Shown here piece after piece: positions 3,001 to 53,799 of a stretch of 64,000 nucleotides of DNA. Position numbers and translations under genes: made by a program. The notes under the pieces are model-generated. The model was not told where the DNA came from. It did not search any database and saw only the letters and a program-made list of their open reading frames with translations. Position 1 is the stretch's first letter, and each line of letters begins with the position of its first letter. This DNA comes from Thalia democratica (Eukaryota): NCBI GenBank assembly GCA_965202585.1, contig OZ241826.1, positions 91,574,001-91,638,000 of the forward strand, in the 5' to 3' direction.

Positions 3001-6000
3001 CTCATCAAGCAGCAAGTTGCACCTCTGCAGTCCAATGAAGTGGCGCAGTTGAGAAAGAAGTGCTCGCAGTTCGATGTAAGGAAATATTTCATGTTTTTTT
3101 TATTTTGACTGTAAAGTCTTTGAATCAAAAGTAACAGCTTTTGTTAGCACAAATGTCAGTTTATGAATACTGTTCTAGGGTTATGAGTTAATGTTGAAAA
3201 TTATTTGATAGGAAAATTGAATTAAAAGATCTGAAGCAGAATAAAATACATTAATTTTTATTTACCTCAATTTTAAAATTTACATTAAACTTTTTCCAAC
3301 AAAATTATTTATTAAATTAAAAATAAAATAACTGATTGACAAGTTGCTAAATAGTGTAACAGACATTTGCTTTTAACTTACCGTATTTAAAAATTCACAT
3401 TAAAACTTTTTTTCTTCCATCGAAGGTGTCCCAACACGAATTCCGTGAGAAGTTCCGCCAGACGGCGCCGTTCAAGTTCGACTCGGCCAACTACTACGAG
3501 TCTCTTCAAAAGCGACACGAGGAAATCAGCCGCATGGAGGCGACGATGAGCAAATTGTACCAATCGGCGGCCACCTTCGAGGTGAACGCTCCTGACTTCA
3601 AGCAGATGAAGCAGTGCAGGAGAGAGGTTAATTAATATTATTTAATTTTAAAAACAGAAATTAAACTTATAAATTACAAATGTTCCTATACACAATTGTC
3701 ATTATATGGTTTTGAAACTTTATTTTTTTTTCACCTACAAACAATCAGGCATAAAGCGAAATTTAATTCAGTTTTTTTTTATGAAATAAACTAAATGAAG
3801 CAGTGCAGGAGGGAGGTAAGATGATTAGTGTTGTGTTTATATGACCAAATTATTATTTAAGGTGTTAATAAGACTGAGTATTACAAGTGTCGCCTTACTA
3901 AATTGTCATAGTAAAATTAAAAATAACAGACTAAAGTTTGACCTATAAACAATTGACAATACAGCAATTCAAGTTTTTTTAGGAATTGAGCTTAAAACTT
4001 TGTTTAACTTGACATTTTTCGTTACATTTGCATCCCTAAACACTACAAAACTTGAGTTTTAAATTTATGAACATTTCCAGGTGAAACTGCTGAAAACACT
4101 GTGGGACATGATAGTGGTGGTGACGACCTCCATTGACAGCTGGCAGTCCACGAAATGGTCGGAAATCAACGTGGACCAGATGGAGACCGAGTGCAAGAAG
4201 TTCGCCAAGGACATCAGGACGCTCGACAAAGAGGTTTATTTTGTTATGGTGTTAAATCGAAAATAGTTTAAAAGAAGATATAGAGGTTGTTTTATGTTTT
4301 TTATTACGTTTGTTTTGTTTTGGTAAATTGAATTGAAACTAATAAAATCAGTTGATAGTTTTTTGTCCTCGTAAAAATAAGTTTTAATCATTTTGTTGAT
4401 GTATTCAACACATTTTTAAATATAAAGTTTTGATAATAAGTTTACAATGAGTTTGGTATCATACTGTTTGTGTCAAGTTTAACAAAAAAGCGTTTCAAAC
4501 ATTATAATTGATTTCTTATTTATTTTTAAGATGCGGGCATGGGATGCATTTTCGGGATTGGACAGCACGGTCAAGAACACTATGACGTCATTGAGAGCCG
4601 TTTCCGAGCTGCAGAACCCCGCAATAAGAGAAAGGCACTGGCAAGAACTCATGCAGGCAACACAGGTTGGTTTCGAAAATGTAAAAATTAAAATAAGGAT
4701 GATTTTCAATATGTAGCAGTTATCATAAAAAACTTATAATGAAAATTCAAATAATATCATTTAAAATGATGCTGTATTCTTTGTTTAAGTCTTTTAAAAA
4801 CAAAATTCTGTTGATTTGTATGCAAATTTTTATAATCTTAAGTCAACATTTATACGTAAAAAAGTTAAAAAATTTAAATTCTCTAAAGTTGATTAATTTT
4901 TAAATATGCTTTTTCACTCAGCTTATATAAGGTGTGCAAGTGTGTGTACATATTTGGTAAGAAATGTATTTAGTTTATCTAAAATGCAAGTACACTTTAA
5001 CTAAAACAATTTTACCCTCTCTCAGGTGAAATTTATCTGAAACAATTTTATCTTCACAGGTGAAAATTATCTGAAATAATTTTATCTTCACAGGTGAAAA
5101 TTATATGAAATAATTTTATCTTCACAGGTGAAAATTATCTGAAATAATTTTATCTTCACAGGTGAAAATTATCTGAAATAATTTTATCTTCACAGGTGAT
5201 AGAAGCTTAAATCAAGAAATAAAAAATACTTTTTATAAAATAAAAAAAATATATTTTTACCCTATCCCAGGTGAAGTTCGTCATGGACGACACGACCACG
5301 CTGGCCGACCTGCTCTCCCTCAACCTGCACAACTTCGAGGAGGAGGTAAGGGGCATCGTGGACAAGTCGGTGAAGGAGATGGGCATGGAGAAGGTGCTGA
5401 AGGAGCTGGACGCGACGTGGGGAGAAATGAAGTTCAACTACGAGCTGCACCAGCGCACCGGGTTGTCACTCATCCAGTCGGACGAGGAGCTGATCGAGAC
5501 GCTGGAGGAGAATCAGGTTTGTTAAAAGATTGTGAGAGATTTGAGCCAATTTAGCTTTAAACTAGTGTTAAAAATAGTTAAATAGTTTTTTTTTTTAAAA
5601 AGACAAACTTAATTAAAATACTAGATAAAAGTTTGTTAAATAAAAATGTATAAATTAATGTGTTAAATTTAAATAAGTTGTTTGAAATAAAGGCGAACTC
5701 GATTGAAGTATTAGAAAATAGATTGAATTTTAAGCAATAAAACAATTGTTTTCAGTCATGTTTGTGAGAGATTTAAGCCAATTTAGCTTTAAATTAGGAT
5801 TGATAGCTATCAAATAGTTTAAAGTTAAAGCGAGTTCGATTAGAATGTTAGAAACTAGATTGAATTTTAAATTAAAGTCTAATTGTTTTGTTAATGTCTG
5901 TGGGAGAATTAAGTCATTTCCTCTGTAAGCAATTCAAAAACATTAAAAGTCAATAAACAGTTTTAATTTAAAGTTATACCAACCAAGCGTGACGCAAATA

Positions 6001-9000: not shown

Positions 9001-12000
9001 TCACCAGATTGACAGCGCATTAGCGTTCATGTGGTTGCGCCAACTGCGCCTGCGGTGGGACGACAAGCTGAACCACGCGTTCGCCAACATCTGCGACGCC
9101 CAGTTCAAGTATTCGTACGAGTACCTCGGGTGCACCCCAAGGCTCGTCATCACCCCACTCACCGATCGGTGAGTTGTCGGAAATATTATGTGTAGAATTT
9201 TTTTTAAAGTTTTATAAAATGAGTTCAAGGCTCTTTAACAAACTTACTGATCAGTAAATTGTTGTTTGTGGAGAAAAAGAGCTTTGACAAAACTTCTATA
9301 AGCTCTAAATAAGTTGAATAAAGATGTTACAGTTATATTTATCTTTAAGTTGGGAAAATTTAATAAAGTGCAAAATTATAAAAAAAAAATTAATTAATAA
9401 AAACAAAATACTGTTAATGCAATTTTATATATTAAGTTTAATGTTTAGATTTCAAATTTTCAGCAATTAAAACTTCAGGTTATGAAATATGACTAACTTT
9501 ATTCATTTCAGTTGTTACATCACGCTGACGCAATCGCTCCACCTGACGATGAGCGGGGCTCCCGCGGGGCCGGCGGGTACCGGGAAGACCGAGACGACCA
9601 AGGACCTGGGCAGGGCGCTGGGCATAATGGTGTACGTGTTCAACTGCAGCGAGCAGATGGACTACAAATCGTGCGGAAACATATACAAGGTGAAAATTAT
9701 TAAAAAAACGGTTTAAAAATGCGAAAGTATGTTGTTTCATTTACATTTACTAGGTATGTGGGTGATGCTGACGGTGTTTGTTGAAATATTAATTTTTTAC
9801 AACTTTACTTATTTTACAACTAAAACTGTTTGTCTTAAGTATAGTGAACTGCCCGATCCGGATCTTTTATTAAAAGTAAGATTTAAATTGATTTCTAGAA
9901 GTTAAAGTGATAATAACTAGATTATTAGGTATTTTTTTTAAACAAAAGCATTGTATCATAATAAGTGCATGTTGATGGTAAAAAGTGAAAATGAAGCGAC
10001 TTATTTATTTAGTAAGTTAGAATCTAGTATTAAATCCATGTTTTATCTAGGGCTTGGCGCAAACCGGAGCTTGGGGATGTTTCGACGAGTTCAACAGGAT
10101 TTCCGTTGAAGTCTTGTCCGTGGTGGCTGTGCAAGTTAGTGGTTTTAATTTTATTAAAAAACAGTTTACAGCAAGTTGTGAAATAATTAAGCAAACTAAC
10201 TGTAACAGTCTCAAGTGTTAATCAAGTATATCAAATTATAGCTATCAGTAAAACTTTCAGGTCAAGTGTATACAAGACGCGATCAAGGAGAAACGGGAAA
10301 GGTTCGACTTCTTGGGAGAAGAGATCAATCTGGTTCCGACGGTCGGCCTGTTCATAACCATGAACCCCGGGTACGCCGGAAGAACCGAACTTCCCGAAAA
10401 TCTTAAGGCTCTTTTCAGGTCAGTAGATTTAAAAAACTTTATGAAAAATATAAACTGTTTGTTTGAGGATAGCTTTAAAAAGTACAAGATTGTGTGCTTG
10501 AGGTGCATATATAAGCAACATGGCTGATAAAAAATGACAAATATTTAATTAATCATCTACTATTTAATTTAACAAAAAAAAGTTAAACTTTGTTTAGGTT
10601 ACAATGTTTGGCTGAAAAACAGCTCTTTGTAAAGCAATAAAATACAAAATAGGTTTTGCTCCTAACGTAAGCTGTATTAATCGAACTTAGTAATTTTATA
10701 CGAGATTGCTTAATAAAAGTATAAGCTACAAATAAGTCTTAATATTAACTATTACCAAATGTAGTAATTTGGTAAAAGATACATTCAAGTGTACTTAATG
10801 TAAGCTGTATTGGTCGGATGTAGTCATTTGAAGAGTGATTGTACAGATAGTTGAAAAAGCATTTTCAGTAATACTGTTTCCAAACAACAGGCCGTGCGCG
10901 ATGGTGGTGCCCGACTTCGCCATGATATGCGAGATCATGCTGGTGGCGGAGGGGTTCATCGACAACAGATTATTAGCCAGGAAGTTCATCACCCTGTACA
11001 CCCTATGCAGGGAGCTGCTTAGCAAGCAGGACCACTACGACTGGGGACTGAGGGCCATCAAGTCCGTGCTGGTGGTGGCCGGCACGCTGAAGAGAAGCGA
11101 CCCCGGCAGGGCTGAAGACCAGGTTTGTTTTTATACTGTTTCTGTAGATATTTTGAATTAAAATCTTACACTACAGTGACTACCTTTGTTTCTTTACTTA
11201 GTTTTAGTATGAAGCATATCAAAAAGTTGACATCTTACGAATAAGTAGGTTAAAAATTAATAAAACTTTTAAAAATTGTCTTTACATATAAGGTTTCCTT
11301 ACAACAGTTTCTTTAATAAGGGCGTTCACAATTGTTTATTTAACAACAACTAGTGCCTCTTCAGAATGTTTTTGTTTTAAAAATACTTTTACATTAATTT
11401 CAACTAAGGTCCTTATGAGAGCGTTGCGCGACTTCAACATACCGAAGATAGTCACCGATGACATGCCGGTCTTCATGGGGTTGATCGGAGATCTGTTCCC
11501 CGCAATCGACGTTCCCAGGAAGAGAGATCCCGAGTTTGAGAAGATTGTTAAGGTGTGTTGAGATTTGCAGGGTTCCGGTTGAACATAAGAGTTGTTTTCT
11601 GGATTTTAATTTTTTGTCAAAGTAAACTGATTAGCTTAAATATTAAAGTAGAAAAAAAATTGTTACAATTTTTAAATTTTCTTTTGAAAAGCATTCTGTG
11701 TTTGGCTTATTATTCTGCTATTATAAAAATAAGCAAGAAGTTGCTTTTAATATGCTTGACCGATCCTTAATTTTAATATTAATAATTTTGTAAATTATTA
11801 AAATCTTACTGTAATTACAGCAATCGATGATCGAGATGAAGTTGCAGCCGGAAGACAACTTCTTGCTGAAGATTGTTCAGTTGGAAGAATTGTTGTCAGT
11901 CAGACATTCCGTGTTCGTCATCGGTAACGCCGGTACCGGAAAATCCCAGGTACTTAAGGCACAGTTTTATTTTGTAAGATGCACATTTTATGAAAACTGT

Positions 12001-15000: not shown

Positions 15001-18000
15001 TTATTTCAAAAATTTATTTTTAATAAGGTAAGTTTTTAAATGTTATAAAAAATATTTTTAAAACAACAGTTGGTGGACCATCGGGTTGAATTCAGCAAGT
15101 GGTGGACGACGGAGTTCAAAACGGTCAAGTTTCCCTCCCAGGGCACGGTCTTCGACTACGTGGTGGACAACGAGACCAAGAAGTTCATCCCGTGGTCCGA
15201 AGTCGTGCCCAAGTTCGAACTCGATCCGGACATGCCTTTGCAGGTACCTGTTTGGTTGAAATTGTCTTTATAATGTTTCTGTAACGTATCTTAAAAGAGT
15301 TAAAATTATACCTATAAAATTATTTCGAAATTCAGCATTTTTATATTTGATAAAGTTCTTTAAAACCATTTGATTTTTATCAAAAAATGAAGAAATTTAC
15401 CTCATTAAGGTAACATGGGTCAGCGTTTTTATCAACTTAAAAAGCCGGTTGTATAATTGATAGAGTTCTTGAAAACTGTTAGATTTAAAAAAATAGTTGA
15501 ACAAAATTAAGCTTAAAATTTTTATTCAACCTGTAAAATATACCTCACAAAATTTGGATAAAAACAATCCACCAATCAAACAGGCGCAACTGGTCCACAA
15601 TTCGGAAACGATCCGGGTGAAGTTCTTCGTCGACCTGCTGATGGAGAAGCGACGGCCGGTGATGCTGGTGGGAAACGCGGGCACCGGCAAGTCGGTCCTC
15701 ATTGGCAACAAGCTGTCGTTGCTTGACGACGAGCACTACGCCGTTGCCAACGTCCCCTTCAACTACTACACCACCTCCGAGATGCTGCAAGGTAGGAAAA
15801 TACTTTTTTTAATAAAATTTTTTTTTCTATTTGTGTCATTTTGATTCAGCTTGAGTTATTTTGAATTGAAATTGAAACTTATTGTGGGCATAATATACTG
15901 TGCAAGTTAAAAAAAAAGTACACTGCAAAATACGTTCACATTGTTTAAAAAACCCTTTGTAGAAATATGCATTAAAATAATATTTTGTATACAATGAAAC
16001 TTAACAGCGGTGTTGGAGAAGCCGCTTGAGAAGAAGGCGGGCAGGAACTACGGTCCGCCAGGCACGAAACGGCTGGTGTACTTCATAGACGACATCAACA
16101 TGCCGGAGGTGGACACCTACGGAACCGTGCAACCCCACACCCTTATCAGGCAGCACATGGACTACACTCACTGGTATTTGTTTATATAGAAAACTGTAAA
16201 AATTATTTACTCGTTTTAAATGCTTTTTTTAAGATTTAAGTTATAACTGTTGAACGAAAGAATTTATTGTAATTAAGATCTTTCAGATAAGATCTCAAAA
16301 ATATGTGTTTAGTGTTTACATAAGTTGAAAATAAGTTTGTTTAAAAATATAGTTTGTTTGTTTTTTTTTATGTTTATTCTATTTGAATAGAACTATCGAT
16401 TTGTTGTACTGATGAGCTTTTTCAGCATAACATTGTTCTCAAAAAAAAAATAAAAAAAAAATTACTGAAGTAAAGATATACTTTGTTGATTTACTATTGA
16501 GCAAACTATGATATTAATATGTTAAATCTTTGAATAAACTTATGAAAATATTTGGATCTTCTTACAAACATTCTCCATACGAACAGGTATGACAGATCGA
16601 AACTTACACTGAAGGAAATTCACAATGTTCAGTACGTAGTCGGTATGAACCCCACAGCCGGTTCATTCACTATCAGCTCGAGATTGCAGGTTTGTAAAAG
16701 TTTAGTTAAATATTATCACTTTTGTAAGCTTATTTAAGTTGTGCTGTAAATTAAGCTAAAAAAATAAATTTTGTGGAGTTTGTTAAAAAATTGAAGATAA
16801 ACCTATTTAAAAGTACTCTGAAAAATAAAGATGGTACTTTATTTTATTTATATTTATTATTTTTCATTAGTACAAAAACTATTTAATTTAAGTTTTAAAG
16901 CAGAGGTACAGTATATTTATTTCTGGTATCTCAAAATTAGATGTTAATATTTTAAGATTAAAACAAATTTATTATCGTTGGTTTTTCTTTTTATGTAGAA
17001 TAATATTATAGTGCGTACTCAAATTTTTTATGACTTTATAATATTTATAAAAAATTTCACTAAACGAAACATTAGTCCAGTTTTATTTAAGGTTACTTTT
17101 TGTTCAACTACAATATTTCCACACACAGCGTCACTTCTGCGTGTTCGCTCTGAGCTTTCCCGGCAAGGGCGCGCTCAAGACCATTTTCAGCTCGATATTG
17201 AACCAGCACCTGAAGGACAACTCGTTTTCAACGCAGATACAGAAGCAAGCGGACAACCTGATAGAGGCGGCCCTCTACCTGCACACAAGGGTGGCGCAGG
17301 TGTTCCTCCCCACCGCGGTCAAGTTTCACTACGTGTTCAACCTGAGGGACCTCTCCAACATCTTCCAAGTTGGTTTTAAGATGAGTATAAATAGAAATGA
17401 GAATGTTTGTGCAATTAATTATAATTAATGTATAATTTGAGAATAATTAGCTACGGTTTTTTTTTAAATAAGGTTTTTGCTAGATTATTAAAAAAAAGTT
17501 AAAGCTGTTACTAAGAGTTGGTTTGGTTTTGCAGTAATGATAACTGCGAAAAATTGGTACCCTTAAATGTTTTATGCACACATTTTTGTAATGGTTTATA
17601 GGTTTTGTTACTTAAAAAGTAAAAGAGTTGTTTAAGTTTTTTACTAAAAGTTTATTTAATCTTGAAAGGTGTTTGCGAGAATAGTTTCTTAAAAAGTTTT
17701 TTGTTTTAATTAAAAGTTAAAAAAATTTCTACATTTTCCAAGTCAGTTTGAGATCAGTTTGAGTATTAATAAAAAAAATTTAGACTTTTAAAAGCATTTG
17801 AAAAATTTCTTGTTATGTTTTGAAATTTTTTTTAGCCCTTGAAGAAAAAAGAAATGTTTGAGTTGTTTATTAAAACTGGTTTAAGTTTGGTACTTGTGAA
17901 AAAAAAAGTTTCATAAAATTTTTCATGTAAAATTATACTTCTATTATAAAGTGTTTTAAAATTTGCATTTTTGCGGGCCGGCATCGTTTAGAACGACAAC

Positions 18001-21000: not shown

Positions 21001-24000
21001 ATAAATTGTTAGAGTTTACGATAGTTACCTCTTTTTTTTTGCAGTACAAAAGTTATAGTTATAAATAATTTGTTGTAGTTATTTTTTATACTCGTTATTA
21101 AAAAAAATTACAACTCAAACACCCAGGTGGCGCTGTGTTTCTCACCGGTGGGCAACAAGCTGCGGGTCAGGGCCAGGAAGTTTCCAGGAGTGGTCAACTG
21201 CACGTCCATAGACTGGTTCCACGAGTGGCCCGAGGACGCGCTCCAGTCCGTCAGTCTCCGCTTCCTCGGCGAAGTGGAAAACGTTTCGGTTCGTTGGTTT
21301 CGTAACTTATTAGTTTTTTAGTTAAGTTAAATTTTTAAAAAGTTCTAAAAGTTAAATAGAAAAACCAACTGCCAAATGTAACATAAAAAGAACGAGGATA
21401 TTTAATTAAACTGCTTTAACAAAAACAGTTAATGCGTTATTATGTTTTTGATATTATGATATTGTTATTGAAAGTTTAAATAAAAGGTCAATTATAGTAT
21501 TGTAGCTACGTACATTTTTGTTTGTAATACATATGTTTGATAATATAACGAATTAAAACATTACAGGAAGAACACAGGGATTCGATCAGCAAGTTCATGT
21601 CTTACGTGCACGTCAGTGTGAACGAACTCAGCAAAGAGTATCTGCTGAGCGAGAGGTTGTTTGATATTGAAAAAAAAAATAAATAATTAAAACTTTCACA
21701 TTGAGTTATTGTCTTTATTTGCGTAAACTTTTTTAATCTTAGAAAATAAGTTTTGTAAAAACTTTAAAGTTTTAGAAATCTATCTAAAATTTTCTTTACG
21801 TTTATCAACTCACGAATTCTTTCATAAGTCAACTCAGTTAAGTTTAACTCAGTTAATCAACGAAATTTGTGATCTTAAACTCCAATAAAGTTTTTATTCA
21901 AGTAGAATGTGATATACAAACTTTTCATATCAAACTAAACACAATTTTTAAGTTTTTTATCGAACTAAATTCTTGTTTTTAAAATACCTGCAGAAGATAC
22001 AACTACACGACGCCGAAAAGCTTCTTGGAGCAGATCAAACTGTACGAGTCTTTATTAGGCAAGAAGAACTCGCAGCTGCAGGCCGCAGTTGAAAGACTGG
22101 AGAACGGACTTGAAAAATTGAGGAGCACCGCCGCACAAGTTTGTTGTTGATGATTGGTAAAAATAAGTATTTGTTTAAAAAAATTGTGTTCTTGTTATAT
22201 GATCACGGAAGCATTTCATTCACATTAAAATTTTATAGATTATTAAAGTTTTTCCTGCTATCAACTTAGAAGTGAAACGAATATGTAAAAACAATTAAAT
22301 CAAGAACAGTCTTTGCTAAAACAAACAAGTTTAAATATCATATGCAACTTAATATGACTATATTTATTATGATAAACCTTTAAAACTATATGCATTTCAT
22401 TTAACTTTTGATAAAGAATCAAACATAAGAGTCGGAAAGCTCTAAGTTTTAAAATTTGTTAAAAAAATAAATTATCTGTCAAACGGTATCTAAATACAAT
22501 AAAATTCCTTCCGAAAACAAAGATAAGTATTTATATAGTATTTTAGTAAATTTTTATTAAGTCACTGAAACTAAAAACCAAAATTTTCAACTCAAGGTGG
22601 TTTGTAGTTTAAAGCCCAGTTTTAAACCTGTTATAACCAAAAGAATGCTTGTTTAAAACAAACAGTTTTAAAACAACACCTTACCTAACTGAACCAAAAA
22701 ACTCATATTAGGTTATTTCCCTAATGTAAGATTATTCAACTCAAGGTGGACGACTTGAAGGCGAAGTTGGCGGCGCAGGAGGTGGAGCTGAAGCAGAAGA
22801 ACGAGGACGCGGACAAGCTGATCCAGGTGGTGGCGGTGGAGACGGAGAAGGTGAGCCGGGAGAAGGAGGTGGCCGACGTGGAGGAGGGCAAGGTGACGCA
22901 GATCGAGGTGGAGGTCACCGCCAAGCAGAAGGACTGCGCGGAAGATTTGGAGAAGGCCGAGCCGGCGCTGCTGGCCGCGCAGGAAGCCTTGAACACATTG
23001 AACAAGGTGAAGATTTGTCTTGACATGTTGTTTAGCAGTATATATCGTACACGTAACTGATGTAATTTCGGATTATTTTACGCAAGAATGGATTTGTTTT
23101 TAGCGTTATTTAAAGTTTGTTAAAGAATTATTAACATGGAAATATGAAACAGCACAGTATATGCCAGGGGTCGGCAAACTGCGGCCCGCGGGCCAATTGC
23201 GGCCCGCGAAGGGTAAATCTGCGGCCCGCGAGCACGTTATTTTTTTGGATGGAATGCGGCCCGCGAAAGAAAATTTTGTGGCCCGCGAGCATGTAAATGT
23301 GGCCCGCTGATGTAAATATATTTCAAGTTGAATTTTTGTTAATAATTTAGTTTGATTAGTTTGGTTTTAAGTCTCTGTATAACATTTAAAAATAATTAGA
23401 AGAAATTACTGCTTTAGTTTAAAAATGTGAAAAAGACAGATTAGCATTCTAACAGGATACTTTTCCGAGTTTCATAAAATTTTCTTTTTTACAACAGCAA
23501 GTAATTATCTGAAAAAATAGTGTAAAGAGTGATTGAATTTAATAAAATAGTTATATAATACCTATTTATTAAATAAACTAAATGCAAATGTTTTCTATTT
23601 TGTACAAAAGTAATTCACAGTAATTAACTAAAGTGTCATTTCTTTATAGCTTAGATATTCTTTTTCAATATTTTTTATACCTAAGTTTCCTTTATAGATT
23701 TTTTTTTGTAAATGTTATATTTTAGTGTAAAAACATTTAACATAACATAGTAATAAGAAATAAGGTTTATTTGATTTTTGTTTTGACACATTTTAATTTT
23801 TTAAAAGTTTTCTCTGCACTTTGAATTAATTTCTATGCACACCAACTTAAAAAGATGCTCATACTTTAAACCACTTTTTATTTAATACTTTAGTTAGTTA
23901 AAGTTTAGTTTATGCTTAGTTTTCTAACATTGTTGTTTCTACATGTAATATCTAAATTATACACACACGTTTAAAACAATATGACATGAATTAATATAGT

Positions 24001-36000: not shown

Positions 36001-39000
36001 AGTATATTTAGAAAAAAAATTTCATTGCATAATTTAACTTGTGACGATCGCTCGACTCCTCGGTACTTTCCCTAGACGGAGCCGGCGGTCGAGACTTCTC
36101 TGTTTCGCTAACAACGGGATCAGGCGCGTTGGCTGACTCAGAGCGAGTTGTCATTTTGGCCAATTTCTTGGCAACTTGTTTTGAATTCATGTCGCGCTAC
36201 TTATCGATTGATATACCGCGAATGAATGGTCAAGTAGTATAAACTAAAACAACAAAAATGTATAAACACAATTATTTATTAAAAGAACTCACAACGTAAA
36301 ATATAACACACAAGTAATCTTTATAATCGTAAGTAAATGAACACAAGTATAATATTAGACTAAAACTAGCAAAAAGTAAAACACTGACTTTTGTCTATAT
36401 CGTCTATGCGATCAAGAAGCGCATGCGATAAAAAGCGCATGCGATACAAAAGCGACGTAATCGTTCATGCGTAGTATATATAGTGCTTTAACAATCCCTT
36501 TTTCCTAATTCTCTCAATTTATAACAGAGCATGTCTGTTAGACTGCTACAAACTAACTAATGTAGATCTGAGTTCTAAAATGACAATACCATGCATTTTT
36601 TAGTTTTAAGTTGTTGTTAGTTTACCTATTAGCAACTTTAGCTCAATTGGTATAAAAAATGCAATTTTTTTAACTACTAAAATGTTCAACAGGACACTTT
36701 GGAAATGTGCGCCAGAGAGCAGGAGTTCAAAGCAATTTTGTTCGCGCTGTGCTACTTCCACGCGGTGGTGTGCGAGAGAAGAAAGTTCGGTCCTCAGGGA
36801 TGGAACAGGGTCTACCCGTACAACACCGGCGATCTGACCATCTCCGTCAACGTCCTGTACAACTACCTGGAAGCCAACAACAAGGTGATTTATAAATAAA
36901 ATAGATGAAAAGCTTGTAAGACTGCGAAAGCGATACAAGTTGAATAAAAAATGAATGAGTTTTGTTTTAATTGCAAAAATTAAATGCAAGTGTACAAATT
37001 TTGTAGTTGTATTATGTGTTATGTTAAACAGTTAAAAGCAATCTATTTTTTTTAATGCTTTGTAAAAGATTGCAACGTTTGAATAATATACTAAAATACA
37101 CTTGACACTAAGATTAAGTAAATTTAGTTCTAAAGTAAGTTTATAATGTTTTATGTTCTAATGATAATAAGTACAAAATATGCATTTACCACTAAGGGAT
37201 ACTTTACAAACAAATTTGATGCATATTGAACACAAGGTACCATGGGACGATCTTCGGTACTTGTTCGGTGAGATCATGTACGGGGGACACATCACGGACG
37301 ATTGGGATAGGAGGTTGTGCAGGACCTACCTGCAGGAGTTCATGAACCAGGAGATGTTCGATACCACCATCTACCTGGCACCGGGATTCCCCGTACCCCC
37401 ATCATTGGATTACAACGGTACGTTTGATGTTTTATTTTTTATGTTAAGATGTATATTGATTGGTATTTCTAGATGCATTATTCTTGTAAAATACGAGTTC
37501 TTTTGTGTAAAACTTAGTAGATGGCATTAGTTTTTTTTAATGAAATAAGTTTATCCGTTAAGTTGGTTTTGGAATAAAGCAGTTATCAATTTATGCTTTT
37601 TAGAAATACAAGTAATCATAATTGTAAACAGTTTGCTTAACATTGGCAAACCTACGACCCGTAAAACTTCAAACATTCTTAAAAATATTTATTCTATTCT
37701 AAAACTAGTTTGATGACTTATTTCTTTAAAAGTTTAATAAACTACAATAAAAACAAAACGCAGGGTACCACCAGTACATCGACGACGCCCTGCCTCCAGA
37801 GTCCCCGTATTTGTACGGGCTGCACCCCAACGCCGAGATAGACTTTCTCACTTCGACCTCGGACAACCTGTTCCGGACCATATTGGACCTCACCCCCAGG
37901 GACTCCGGGACGAGCGGCGATTCCGGAGACACCAGGGAGGAAAAAGTTGGTTCTTTGATAAAATAAAAATGTTGCGGGTTTTAAGTAGTTTGGTGTACAG
38001 CTAGTCAATTTTTATTTTAGTTAAAGAACTTTATTCAACACCATCTCTGAAAAACGTCACATTCGATGTTAACATGTTTAAACAACATTTAGCCAAATGT
38101 CTACTTAGTATAAATTAATTAACAGATAAAGTCGATATTAGACGAGATACTAGACAAACTGCCGGACCTGTTCAACATGTTCGAGCTGCAAGCGAAAGTT
38201 GATCCGAGCGAGAGAACTCCTTACATGGTGGTGGCGTACCAGGAATGCGAGAGAATGAACGTGCTCATTGGCGAGATAAGGTTTGAAAGATGTTTTATAG
38301 ATTTCATGCAAAGTTTTTATTTTGTTTGATAATTAAATATTCGCACTGAATAAAATACTATTCTTAACTTTTTGTGAAAATATTTACATCATTATTTTAA
38401 AATTAACAACTTTTTGACAGTATATCAATTTAGAAACTTATAAGCTTTAACCAAGTGTAATAGTTATTCTTTTCTTTGATTTTTAATCGATATATTTATT
38501 TGGTAATTTTATCTCACAAAGGTCCACACTGAAGTCGCTGGATCTTGGTCTGAAGGGAGAACTGACGATAACTCCGCAGATGGAGGCGCTGGGGAATTCC
38601 CTATTTCTAAACACGATTCCGGAAAGCTGGGCAGCCAAGGCGTACCCCTCCATGGCCGGATTGAGCTCATGGTTTGTTTGTTGAACAAATTTTTGGTTTT
38701 AATAAACTAGTGACAAGTGTGTTTGTATGTTATTTTTTTTTTAACTAAATCAGGGTTGCCACTCGGTCAGGAAAAGTCAGGAAATCAGGAAAAGTCAGGA
38801 AAAATTTTAAAAAATGACAAAAGTCAGGAAAAGTCAGGAAAAAATTGGGGGTTTTGAAAAAAAGTCAGGAAAAGTCAGGAAATTTGATAAAATTAAAAAA
38901 AAAATTCAGGTTTTATCAGATTAAATTTACAAAATTCCTTGTTTTCCAAAGCCTTCAAATGGTAAAAATTAATTAAAGGTCCTTTAAAGTCAGAAAAAAA

Positions 39001-49932: not shown

Positions 49933-52900
49933 TTATTTATTCGGATGATTGCGTTTCACATGGCTTTGCAACGATTGTACGTGTTTGTAAGCTTTTTGAC
50001 AATGAGGGCACGCGAAATCTCTGTTTTTGCTATGAACCCTTTGGTGAGCTGTCAAGTGGACTCTCCTGTAAAATGCTGACGTGCAATTTGGAAACGGGCA
50101 CGCAAACGGCCTTTTTCTATCAGTATGAATCTTCTCGTGTCTTCTGAGAATTTGTCTGGTTGCAAATGTTTTGAGGCAAACATCGCATTGAGCCCTTTCA
50201 TCGCCCGTTTTCGCATCTGGAGCAAGTCTGTTCTTTTCTTTGACTTTAATTGTATCATCACAACCTAAAAAAATGTTAAGCTTACTAAATTAAGGGCCTT
50301 ATAAGATTTATCAAAACTAGTTTAACTGTTTTTTACAGCTTTTAGTTTTCTTGAATATAAGATTTAAAATTATTTAAACTAGTTTTGTATCAATAACTTT
50401 TATAGATAACACTTGAAATAACCTCTAAGAAAATACAATTTTTTTTGTTTAAAACTGGAACTCTATTAATCAAAAAACGTTAATTTTAGCCAAGTATCAA
50501 ACACATAACCACAACTGAACTAATAGGAAATTTAGGGCAAATTGAGGAATTACAACAAGTGTGAAAACTAGGTTTTACAACAATAAAGACTTTTGAGTTT
50601 ATTACTTAAGTCCAAAACCTTAAACATAAAAACATACAAACTTAATGTTACCAAAAAAATATGATATAATTCAAAATGAAAAATATTTACCTTTCGCAGT
50701 TTTAGGCAGATCATCAACTTCAGCTTTTCCTGCATTATGTAAACTTCCTTCTAAACCTGTTTTCGATATGTAATTACTACTACTTAACTAGGAGATTTGA
50801 AAATTTTATAACTTTTATTTGTTTTGAAATATTTTTTTAGTTATTAATGTAATATGAAAGTAAGACATTTAGCGTAAACAAAAAACTTTGATTTCTTTAG
50901 AAAATCAATTCAGCTTTTTTAGCTTTATGTTTAATTTTGTAACCTGAAAATCCGAATAGTTTTTGAGCTGAATAGACTGTATTAAACAGTCAGTTAGAAA
51001 TAAGAAGATAACTGTTTTACTTTTATAGCATAGTATCAAAAGTTTATAAATTTATTTACTTAATTTTTGTTTTAGCAACTTTTACAGATAATCTAAAAAA
51101 AGGAATTAAAAAGTCCATATTTAAAATATACAACGAAGAATTTAAAAATAACGGTTTATCAACAAAATGTAAATGAAAACTTATGTCATATATGACTTTT
51201 TAAACCGTTGATAAATTAATAGCAAATTTAGGTTAAGGTAACGAGATTTACCAAAAGTAAAAATATCTTTGAAATAAGTGACGTTTTTTGTAAACTTGTA
51301 TGTCTAAAACTAAAACAACAATTAAATAAACTAAGACATTGTATGTCCAAAATGTTAATGCAAGACGTATTTATATAGATGGATTATATCATTTAAATTT
51401 CAATATTACCTTCTGTTTTCACAGGTAAGTCGTTAAATGCAGCTTCTTTCGGTTCAGGTAAATTTTCTTTCAAACCTGTGTTTGTTTTGTTGCTTTATTA
51501 CTACTTGACTTTTATTTTAAACCTCAAAACTTTTACAGCTTGTTAAATGTAAATAAGTTATGTTATGTAACAAGTAAGATATCTTATAGTTGATTGTAGT
51601 TTATTACATTTAGTTCATCAAACTAATAAACTTTTGTTAATTTTAAAGATACAGTACAAATTGTAAATTATAACTACTTTGGCTTTAAACCACAAAAAAC
51701 AAGAGAGTTTATAACTGTTTTTGTATCATACTAGTATATATATATATTAGTTTTAACTCATACTATTTTGGAAGCACTTAATAAAAGTACAGTTTTGTGT
51801 GTTTATTTTAAACTTCTACCAATGTTAAACAATAAAACTTGCCTTACTAATATCAATTTTACAAATATGATATAAAAATACTTGATTTGTTTAGTAAATA
51901 ATCATTTTTTAAACAAGAACTTTTTTTATAATTTTTGTTATTTGAATTTAGATAACCTATGGGTGTGTTTTTTATTTTACTTATCACAAACGAGGATAAA
52001 AACTAAATAAAATTTTTCCAAAATTATTTTTACATCCGCCTCCTTCAAATAAATCAAAAAAAATGTTAGACCCCTTAGTTAGATGTTATTACCCACGTTA
52101 TTAATGCTACCTTTATGATTGTTACCCAAATTATTAATTATAACCCCTGATACCCAAAGTTGCTCCAGAAGACCAATATAGCCCATTTTGGTAAACCCTG
52201 TCCTAGACACCGTTTTCATTTGAAATGAGTAAAAGAGCCTTGTTTTCTTTTTATTCTATATTACGGTCTAAAACTGAACAGCTTGAATAAAATAGCCAGC
52301 CATAATGTAGTACTCTATGACTGCTAAGAATTTTATAATCGCCAAAAAGGAAATTCAAAAAAGGATCTTGAATTTTTTTTTTCACAAAGAATCCAAATGG
52401 GTCCGGATCTTAGCATGAAAATCTGATTTGTGGATCGGGTAAATAACTTGTAAATACTTTTATTTTATAAATTTTTAACTTTTAAGTGGGCTCAAGAAAA
52501 TACCTTAAAATAATTTTTCTATGCTTATACTGCTTGTTGAAAATATTAAGTTTAAGATACAAAAAAAAGAAAGTAAACAATGATTGCTAACCTTTTAGGT
52601 TGTTGAGTGCTAATTCACTTTTTTCTTTGTCATTCAAGTATTTGCTAGTATCACTACCAGTTTGTTCTGCTTTACTCCCAGCTCCGCAACTTGATTGTTG
52701 TTTATCAATACTTGTTGTTTGTTTACTTAGTTCACTTTCTGTTTCACAAGAAAGACTGCCATCATATTCAGAAATTCTTCTATAAAACAGAGAATACGCA
52801 GCGGCTTTCAAAGCAAATTTCAACTCAGTTTTTCTTACCGAAGTGTCGTTGTACACATTCCACCGACCACTAGGTGCCTTGCAGTAAGCATAATAATGCC

Positions 52901-53666
52901 CATTGCCTGTCCTACGATTGCCCACGTAAACTATCACGCTGTACAGCTCATACAACACCGTTTCGTCTTGTTTATCTCGTAAATACGAGCTTATGTCAAT
53001 AACTTTTCGGAACTTTATCGGTTTTCTTACTTTCACAACCAAAACTTGCGGGCAAGATGTGATCACATTTTGTTCAGTCCAGCTCGTTTGTTTGTTGCAT
53101 TGATCACAATTTTTTTTAGAATCTTTTACAGCAAAGTATTTATTCAGGTTGTCTACAACATCGCCTTTTCCTGAGCCAAGGTAAGGAAAGCCTTTAATTC
53201 TATCCTCACTACCGCAGGCCTTACATTGACTTATTTCTTCTTGCTTGCACACAAAAATATCTTCCAGAAAGTTTTCTGAACAGCTTTTATCATCGACTTT
53301 TCCCATTTGTTCTTCCAAAAGAGTAAGAAACTCTATCGGGTCATTTTCCTCATTAATCTTCATACCTAAATTGTTTCCATCCATGACTTTTTTCAAACAG
53401 GCAACTGGCTCAATGAGAACTGGCTTCTTAATTCCAGTTTTGTTCAACTTGTCTAAATTGAAAAAAGTTTCCTTCACATTGCAGTAGTGACAACCTTTTT
53501 GGCAGGTGCAGTCGTGCTTCAAAAAGTGGTTGAACACCGAAGGTGTGTGCATAAGGGTCTGCATGACTGAGTTTGCGTAGCAGTTTAGGTTTTTGTTGAC
53601 CAATCCTGGCATTCTGCTTACTAATGCTAAATCAGATTGCCATTTCGATTCAATTTTGTAAACCAT
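49933..53666 (-). CDS. Ubiquitin-specific protease (peptidase C19, USP36/42/17-like) fused to three C-terminal C2H2 zinc fingers; 4 coding exons, about 512 aa
   Basis: Exon 53666-52592 has the Cys box GLVNKNLNCYANSVMQTL, two CxxC pairs (CKAC, CDQC), the His box YELYSVIVYVGNRRTGNGHYYAYCKAPSGRWNVYNDTSV and AAYSLFYRR. It ends AAA G|GTTAGC. Two 66-nt phase-1/1 exons follow (51475-51410, 50756-50691). The terminal exon 50264-49933 encodes CDVCLKTFATRQILRRHEKIH, CPFPNCTSAFYRRVHLTAHQRVH and CPHCQKAYKHVQSLQSHVKRNH, then TAA. All three introns are GT-AG phase 1 and the frame is preserved. An acceptor (ttttacag) at 53691 implies a further upstream exon. Confidence 0.8.
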
Positions 53667-53799
53667 TAAAATGTATATACTTTTTTTTGTCTGTAAAAAT
53701 TCAAACATTAAAAAAAGAATACTTTTTAATGGATGTACAAACGCCACTTAACATGTATGTATTTAAATATATACATAAAAATGTTGTATACAATTATAC

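Follow-up and report, generated by a model that had tools for sequence, protein, structure and literature searches.

A probable gene fusion of a ubiquitin-specific protease with a C2H2 zinc-finger array in Thalia democratica

The genome of Thalia democratica (NCBI GenBank assembly GCA_965202585.1) encodes a predicted protein in which the catalytic domain of a ubiquitin-specific protease (USP) is followed by an array of three C2H2 zinc fingers. The gene lies on contig OZ241826.1, a contig of more than 92 Mb within an 802-Mb assembly, and was studied in a stretch of 64,000 nucleotides (nt) of AT-rich eukaryotic DNA with 30% G+C (positions 91,574,001 to 91,638,000 of the forward strand; hereafter the window, to which plain coordinates refer). 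The whole gene is on the minus strand. Its four exons, separated by three introns, are predicted to splice into a 512-codon open frame that starts at an ATG, and the predicted product of 512 aa carries the USP at its N-terminus and the three-finger array at its C-terminus. The features of the gene model are as follows.

53691..53699, minus strand: splice-acceptor-like motif tttttacAG, 24 nt 5' of the start codon
52592..53666, minus strand: coding part of exon 1, with the start codon, the USP domain (residues 21-295, Pfam UCH) and a 63-residue tail predicted to be disordered
53580..53582, minus strand: codon TGC of the catalytic Cys29, in the Cys box GLVNKNLNCYANSVMQ (motif GLVNKNLNC29YANS)
52845..52898, minus strand: His box, read from the sequence, from His257 (CAT 52898-52896, GHYY) to Asp274 (GAC 52847-52845, YND)
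51476..52591, minus strand: intron 1, GT-AG, phase 1; donor position and phase kept in all paralogues
51410..51475, minus strand: exon 2, a 66-nt mini-exon of phase 1-1, LKENLPEPKEAAFNDLPVKTE; a homologous 66-nt exon is found in 12/12 other loci
50757..51409, minus strand: intron 2, GT-AG, phase 1, from the spliced frame
50691..50756, minus strand: exon 3, a 66-nt mini-exon of phase 1-1; its counterpart in the chromosome-2 paralogues is PKGNVLKAEKMEIDDTPVEEK, identical in order, length and phase
50265..50690, minus strand: intron 3, GT-AG, phase 1; acceptor ttttAG at the same place in all copies
49933..50264, minus strand: terminal exon, with a short basic lead-in, three C2H2 fingers (Pfam zf-C2H2 x3, zf-H2C2_2) and the stop codon
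50187-50125, minus strand: finger 1 in the terminal exon, C-x2-C
50100-50032, minus strand: finger 2 in the terminal exon, C-x4-C
50010-49945, minus strand: finger 3 in the terminal exon, C-x2-C and H-x4-H

An earlier preliminary description, made from the letters of the sequence alone, had proposed that three phase-1 GT-AG introns join the USP in frame to the finger exon. This structure holds: the introns are canonical and phase-compatible, they yield one open frame of 512 codons, and the pattern is conserved in relatives, recurring in 12 further loci, which goes beyond what chance would give. Exon 1 ends at the phase-1 donor AAG/GTTAGC (the slash marks the exon-intron boundary). The same description was right that an automatic list of open reading frames (ORFs) ends the USP frame inside intron 1, where an in-frame TAG (52589-52587) lies one codon past the donor GT (52591-52590) and closes the unspliced USP ORF. 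The finger exon begins about 2.3 kb 3' of the USP exon on the same strand and ends at a TAA (49935-49933) that is overlapped by two AATAAA hexamers (49941-49932). Exons 2-4 encode 154 residues without any methionine, and there is no in-frame ATG 5' of the fingers in this copy. Because these last 154 residues lack methionine, the finger exons are unable to start translation at an AUG of their own.

At the 5' end, tttttacAG is a candidate acceptor for an intron of the 5' untranslated region or for spliced-leader trans-splicing. A pyrimidine-rich AG precedes the conserved ATG in each of the 12 loci (of 13) for which this region was displayed, by 24 nt here and by 33 nt in most chromosome-2 copies. 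The ATG is taken as the start codon because in-frame stops lie between this acceptor and the ATG in the chromosome-2 copies.

Related loci and the structure they share

The preliminary description had called for a search for paralogues in related genomes. A six-frame search of this genome with the USP and the finger exon found at least 13 loci in which a homologous USP ORF has a homologous finger exon 2-5 kb downstream on its own strand. Identity to this copy is 62-91% for the USP ORF and 55-93% for the finger exon. One locus lies at 68.5 Mb of chromosome 2, and a cluster is found at 81.4-84.9 Mb. The gene is not a one-off event but one member of a family. Judged by these sequences, the family is lineage-specific, partly decaying and centred on chromosome 2, and the chromosome-1 copy described here is a recent off-shoot; L022 (chromosome 2:68505900-68511600) is a near-copy of it, with a synonymous divergence (dS) of 0.09.

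Thirteen loci were modelled, 12 from this genome and one, L001, from a Tara Oceans contig (ERZ907909 k127_1469479). The start ATG and a phase-1 donor of exon 1 (AAG/GTTAGC or CAG/GTAAGC) are present in 12/12 further loci examined, as is the phase-1 finger-exon acceptor ttttAG. Homologues of exon 2 occur in 12/12 other loci with peptide identities of 65-91% and AG/GT flanks at the same positions, and exon 2 shows no indel against L001 or against paralogue L031. An exon 3 homologue (66 nt, AG/GT at the same positions) is present in all further loci examined except L025, and exon 3 is an old duplicate of exon 2. The frame is uninterrupted from the ATG to the finger stop in nine of the 13 modelled loci, which encode 512-680 aa and have 3-5 GT-AG phase-1 introns. 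The other four are broken, and L031 has stops in the USP and finger parts alike, which fits decay as one unit. The Tara contig is 89% identical over the whole locus, exons and introns alike, and keeps all splice sites and mini-exons without indels. A close relative or population of this animal was therefore among those that Tara sampled.

The chromosome-2 copies L023-L029 and L032 carry one or two extra 252-nt exons of phase 1-1 (e.g. L027:2249-2500 and 3909-4160), each of which combines a second exon-3-like unit with a copy of the exon-1 tail. The linker is thus lengthened by internal exon duplication. Exon shuffling, which had been suggested as the origin of the gene, is plausible to this extent: the linking exons are symmetric, phase 1-1, and visibly duplicated in the family.

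A deep paralogue on chromosome 2 (L033, 80.87 Mb) provides an independent test of the fusion because its USP is only ~36% identical to this one, at which distance synonymous sites are probably saturated. In L033, a phase-1 GTAAGT donor lies three codons before the ORF stop and is followed by a 162-nt phase 1-1 exon that encodes one finger and has no ATG. The last exon starts in phase 1 and has three finger motifs (the last C2HC) in the same layout, including the C-x4-C of the second finger. Its composite frame stays open through 592 codons, with four finger motifs in all.

A single USP-C2H2 transcription unit is the best reading of the locus, given the conserved phase-1 structure (13 loci, nine intact), L033 and the lack of a methionine on the finger side. 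We think it likely that the main coding product comes from the fused transcript, and nearly as likely that the locus is a fusion gene with both USP and finger array intact.

USP genes without this arrangement are also numerous. Genome-wide, ~98 six-frame matches to this USP domain were found in several clusters (C7:50.96-51.30 Mb, C14:13-126 kb, C4:35.8 and 71-72.5 Mb, C8:47.7 Mb, for example), mostly as single uninterrupted ORFs in tandem with 31-41% identity. At least one of these USPs, L034, has no finger exon within 5 kb downstream. USP genes with a single exon have thus expanded greatly in this lineage, in a way that recalls mammalian USP17.

The catalytic domain and the zinc-finger array

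Database and fold searches were run on separate pieces of the protein. The N-terminal part matches Pfam UCH (PF00443) over profile positions 2-254 of 254 (E 2.9e-27, 96.3 bits against a cut-off of 23.9). The catalytic Cys, His and Asp named in the preliminary description are where it placed them, and Cys29, His257 and Asp274 are invariant in a 20-sequence family alignment. The four cysteines that form the USP zinc ribbon (C148, C151, C187 and C190; the CxxC...CxxC of the fingers subdomain) are invariant there as well. An AlphaFold2 model built from the family alignment has a mean predicted local distance difference test score of 79.6 and a predicted template modelling (TM) score of 0.81; residues 1-300 are confident and residues 301-358, of low confidence, are predicted to be disordered. 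The best Foldseek match of the model is USP36 (8bs3; E 4.8e-25, TM 0.68-0.75), and the top 50 PDB fold matches listed are all USP catalytic domains. By sequence, the best solved match is again USP36 (E 7e-18), then yeast Ubp8, and among representatives of 1.84 billion proteins the named ones closest to it come from multi-copy, USP17-like genes of vertebrates. By all sequence and fold criteria, the domain is a peptidase C19 domain. With its intact-looking active site it looks catalytically competent, and its best hits suggest a USP17/USP36/USP42-like subfamily.

Directly after the Cys box, at residues 53-62 (53508-53479), the domain has a CxCx3Cx2C motif (CTCQKGCHYC). Its cysteines C53, C55, C59 and C62 are nearly invariant across the family, including the Tara ORFs, and may form an extra zinc site. 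Such a site is not known from other USPs.

The terminal exon has three C2H2 fingers, as had been described: Pfam zf-C2H2 matches three stretches (41.7 bits against a cut-off of 25.2) and zf-H2C2_2 matches at E 8.2e-13 (48.4 bits against a cut-off of 40). The Krüppel signature is complete, with tandem C-x2-4-C-x12-H-x3-5-H, F/Y-x-C and the conserved Phe/Leu core, and the ligands are kept in all intact paralogues. The best PDB sequence matches of the exon are the DNA-binding arrays of ZNF568, Aart, PRDM9, CTCF and WT1, and the paralogues have the inter-finger linkers HTGKKPF, HSGKKPF and HSNEKPF.

Both domains are under purifying selection. For the USP core, the ratio of nonsynonymous to synonymous substitution (dN/dS) is 0.30-0.54 in all comparisons but one (0.89, from a pair with dS 0.03); the fingers give 0.22-0.62, and the linker tail of exon 1 ~1. 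Against its closest paralogue, L022, this copy has a dN/dS of 0.44 in the USP core and 0.27 in the fingers, and against the Tara relative the values are 0.30 and 0.29. Compared with L031, the exons have four gap events in ~1,540 bp, with gap columns in multiples of three, versus 39 in ~2,200 bp of introns. Identity to the Tara contig is 91-97% for exons versus 89-91% for introns, a comparison that barely discriminates because the sequences are too close.

In the comparison with L031, the segment 52781-51410 (tail, intron 1 and exon 2) is less diverged than the USP core. The tail has a dS of 0.26 and the core one of 0.70; intron 1 shows 74.5% identity, introns 2 and 3 ~60%. This pattern suggests gene conversion over the segment.

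What the fingers bind bears on how the fusion would work. DNA binding is supported by the full finger signature, by the TGKKPF and SNEKPF linkers of the paralogues and by the DNA-bound structures among the best matches. The nearest solved USPs are nuclear or chromatin enzymes, namely USP36 and Ubp8 of the SAGA module. On these sequence comparisons, we see the chances that the fingers aim the deubiquitinase at DNA as evenly balanced.

Three points weigh against a DNA-addressed enzyme. The linkers of this copy, HTDRKRPF and HSKNRDF, have the right length but keep only the Pro or the Phe of the TGEKP consensus. Among the chromosome-2 copies, the positions predicted to contact bases hardly differ, and therefore no diversification of targets is visible. 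C2H2 arrays are also able to bind RNA, protein or ubiquitin.

The first two points also favour an alternative in which the fusion is real but its fingers bind ubiquitin, another protein or RNA, in the manner of UBZ-type or protein-binding C2H2 fingers, and serve as a module for substrate or chain recognition rather than as a genomic address. The H-x4-H spacing of finger 3 fits this too, and USPs commonly carry ubiquitin-binding zinc fingers (ZnF-UBP). In addition, C2H2-type fingers occur together with a deubiquitinase domain of a different fold in ZUP1/ZUFSP (PMC5824887). However, the full Krüppel signature in three tandem fingers, the canonical TGKKPF and SNEKPF linkers of the paralogues and the best sequence matches to DNA-bound arrays speak against such a module. 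Known UBZ fingers, moreover, are single and unlinked. We consider a non-DNA role of the fingers unlikely, although it is the best-placed of the alternatives.

One transcription unit or two

The locus might instead consist of two distinct adjacent genes that were copied as a block: a USP gene without introns, which ends at the TAG past the donor, and a small zinc-finger gene whose 5' exons would be the mini-exons or an unseen exon in intron 1. Several observations count against a single fused gene and are shared, in part, with this account. The unspliced frame stops 1-3 codons after the donor in every copy, so that a USP-only product is equally encodable. Intronless, finger-less USP ORFs are abundant in the genome (e.g. 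L034) and on Tara contigs (e.g. L036). Tandem block duplication preserves neighbours and alone would keep two separate neighbouring genes together. The chromosome-2 copies have an in-frame ATG 8 codons 5' of the finger-exon acceptor. Introns are still alignable between the main paralogue groups (60-75% identity), and therefore the chromosome-2 cluster amounts to one or two independent observations, with L033 as the sole deep one.

The locus is also known from DNA alone. The public runs that contain it are only two DNA runs of one sample, with no RNA run among them. The same search with the neighbouring dynein heavy-chain gene likewise returned no RNA run, and the absence of RNA is therefore uninformative. 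Over the locus, the DNA runs consist of genomic unitigs, and their contigs cross the exon 1/intron 1 boundary with no splice joints. For a processed retrocopy, patterns of the exon 1/exon 2 and exon 3/exon 4 junctions, with up to 3 mismatches, gave no match in the genome.

Two neighbouring genes are nevertheless hard to reconcile with the structure of the family. The frame of the mini-exons and finger exon has no methionine here, and the finger-frame ATGs that lie near the acceptor in some copies are not conserved across copies. The junction phases match in this gene and, independently, in L033, whose linking finger exon has no start codon, and the composite frame is wholly open in nine loci. 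The phase 1-1 linker exons, including copies of the USP-exon tail, have been duplicated within the gene, and such intragenic duplication is understandable only for exons whose translation continues that of exon 1. For these reasons, we judge a pair of adjacent genes to be quite improbable.

It is very improbable that this is a silent or decaying copy in a young, fast-turning-over family, with an intact-looking frame and no present function: four of the 13 modelled loci are broken, dN/dS is only moderately below 1 with a neutral tail, and the copy is a recent duplicate (dS 0.09 to L022) known here from DNA alone, but it has no defect in 512 codons, its splice sites are intact, its exon gap columns come in multiples of three, and its USP core and fingers keep the low dN/dS values given above against both L022 and the Tara relative.

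Unitigs from the source DNA runs cover every bin of the locus, and unitigs free of differences lie over the introns and across the boundary of exon 1 with intron 1. Over the exon regions 49940-50198 and 53029-53637, variant unitigs are found too, 2.5-4% different and at ~2x the depth of the unique intron unitigs; these are probably a paralogue or the other haplotype. The neighbouring dynein heavy-chain exons lie on the plus strand at positions 1-40000 (e.g. 10835-11161, 15497-15844, 22746-23060 and 37180-37530) and fill the first two thirds of the window. They were identified by Pfam AAA_6, AAA_7, MT stalk and AAA_lid_11.

Proposed function and comparison with known systems

The preliminary description knew of no characterised USP with this architecture. 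Protein and literature searches agree so far as they go, and the paralogues of this gene share the architecture. No finger array was found in the best 150 of 4,194 representative matches from 1.84 billion proteins. A profile search of 5.8 billion proteins gave 12 matches and a single-sequence word-indexed search gave three, all of them UCH-only and without fingers. The word-index matches are mostly ORFs on Tara contigs of 1-5 kb, which are too short to show a downstream exon, and the negative on fused proteins is therefore weak; in one relative (P0002) the contig ends 0.5 kb past the ORF. Four USP loci from JGI metagenomes are distant and have no fingers. The neighbours of the USP in the ESM Atlas are plain UCH clusters with no C2H2 array. 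A literature search for PF00443 and PF00096 together returned nothing relevant and no USP with a linked classical C2H2 array.

Feature matches in the Atlas raised a giant-virus origin as a candidate, which was set aside: the similarity is one of features only, and the genes have introns, paralogues and a host-like composition.

For the single fused transcription unit, a likely mode of action can be proposed. The finger array would bind a short nucleic-acid motif, most probably ~9 bp of DNA. Binding would tether the USP near bound proteins through a flexible linker of ~130 residues, made of the exon-1 tail, the two mini-exons and the start of exon 4. The tethered USP could then remove ubiquitin or a ubiquitin-like modifier from nearby proteins, for example histones H2A/H2B or transcription factors. 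From a message left unspliced or retaining the intron, a USP-only isoform would result that ends one codon after the donor. Extended to the family, the proposal is that its members are sequence-addressed chromatin deubiquitinases whose short C2H2 arrays bring an active USP to particular genomic motifs, where it would erase H2A/H2B ubiquitin or one of the expanded ubiquitin-like modifiers of the lineage. They would be enzymatic equivalents of KRAB zinc-finger proteins that arose through phase-1 exon shuffling and tandem amplification. This broader proposal is tentative, and we hold it to be doubtful as a whole.

The gene structures point to a probable real fusion gene family, in which a USP has gained a new modular targeting domain, rather than to a single accident. 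None of the chromatin deubiquitinases in this comparison is guided by an array that reads sequence: Ubp8 acts in the multi-subunit SAGA module, and MYSM1 has SANT and SWIRM domains. A USP covalently joined to sequence-reading fingers would, if true, be a genetically encoded means of aiming ubiquitin removal at DNA addresses. A real fusion would offer a simple natural system for the effect of local deubiquitination on chromatin. It would also document effector-domain innovation through the shuffling of symmetric-phase exons, in an animal lineage that evolves fast, and supply, besides mammalian USP17, a second example of tandemly amplified single-exon USP genes. If the fusion is false, the locus is merely a USP gene beside a small zinc-finger gene.

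Among known enzymes, the USP is closest, by best hits, to USP36, USP42 and USP17-like proteins, with USP36 the best solved match by sequence and fold. USP36 is a nucleolar enzyme that acts on the ubiquitin-like protein Fubi as well (PMC10611586). Mammalian DUB/USP17 genes are tandem and dynamic in copy number, with a single-exon catalytic domain (PMC2874809), and here too the catalytic domain sits in a single exon and the genes form tandem clusters of dynamic copy number. In contrast to these enzymes, which are only ~22% identical to it, this USP has its own CxCx3Cx2C motif. No C2H2 array was found described for USP17, USP36 or USP42 proteins.

In the SAGA deubiquitinase module (Ubp8, Sgf11, Sus1, Sgf73), Ubp8 is a USP whose substrate is nucleosomal H2B-ubiquitin, and the zinc finger of Sgf11, beside the active site, contacts the nucleosome (PDB 4zux). 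Among solved structures, Ubp8 ranks second in its relatedness to this USP. The Sgf11 finger, however, is single, is part of another subunit and binds the histone surface without reading DNA sequence, whereas here a Krüppel-type array of three fingers would be covalently attached via a long linker.

ZUP1/ZUFSP has a deubiquitinase and C2H2-type fingers in one chain (PMC5824887). It differs in its catalytic fold, that of the ZUFSP class, and its fingers are not a TGEKP-linked DNA-reading array. In ZUP1 the fingers precede the catalytic domain.

MYSM1 (2A-DUB), a histone deubiquitinase with SANT, SWIRM and JAMM domains in one polypeptide (PMC7216186), is the clearest earlier example of a deubiquitinase joined to a domain that reads nucleic acid or chromatin. 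MYSM1 is a JAMM/MPN metalloprotease and not a USP, and SANT is not a modular sequence-reading array.

KRAB zinc-finger proteins are lineage-specific, arranged in tandem and subject to birth-and-death evolution, and their C2H2 arrays are spliced to an effector via symmetric-phase exons. The family described here differs from them in having only 3-4 fingers and little diversification of contact residues, and its effector is an enzyme, a USP, rather than a recruiter of co-repressors.

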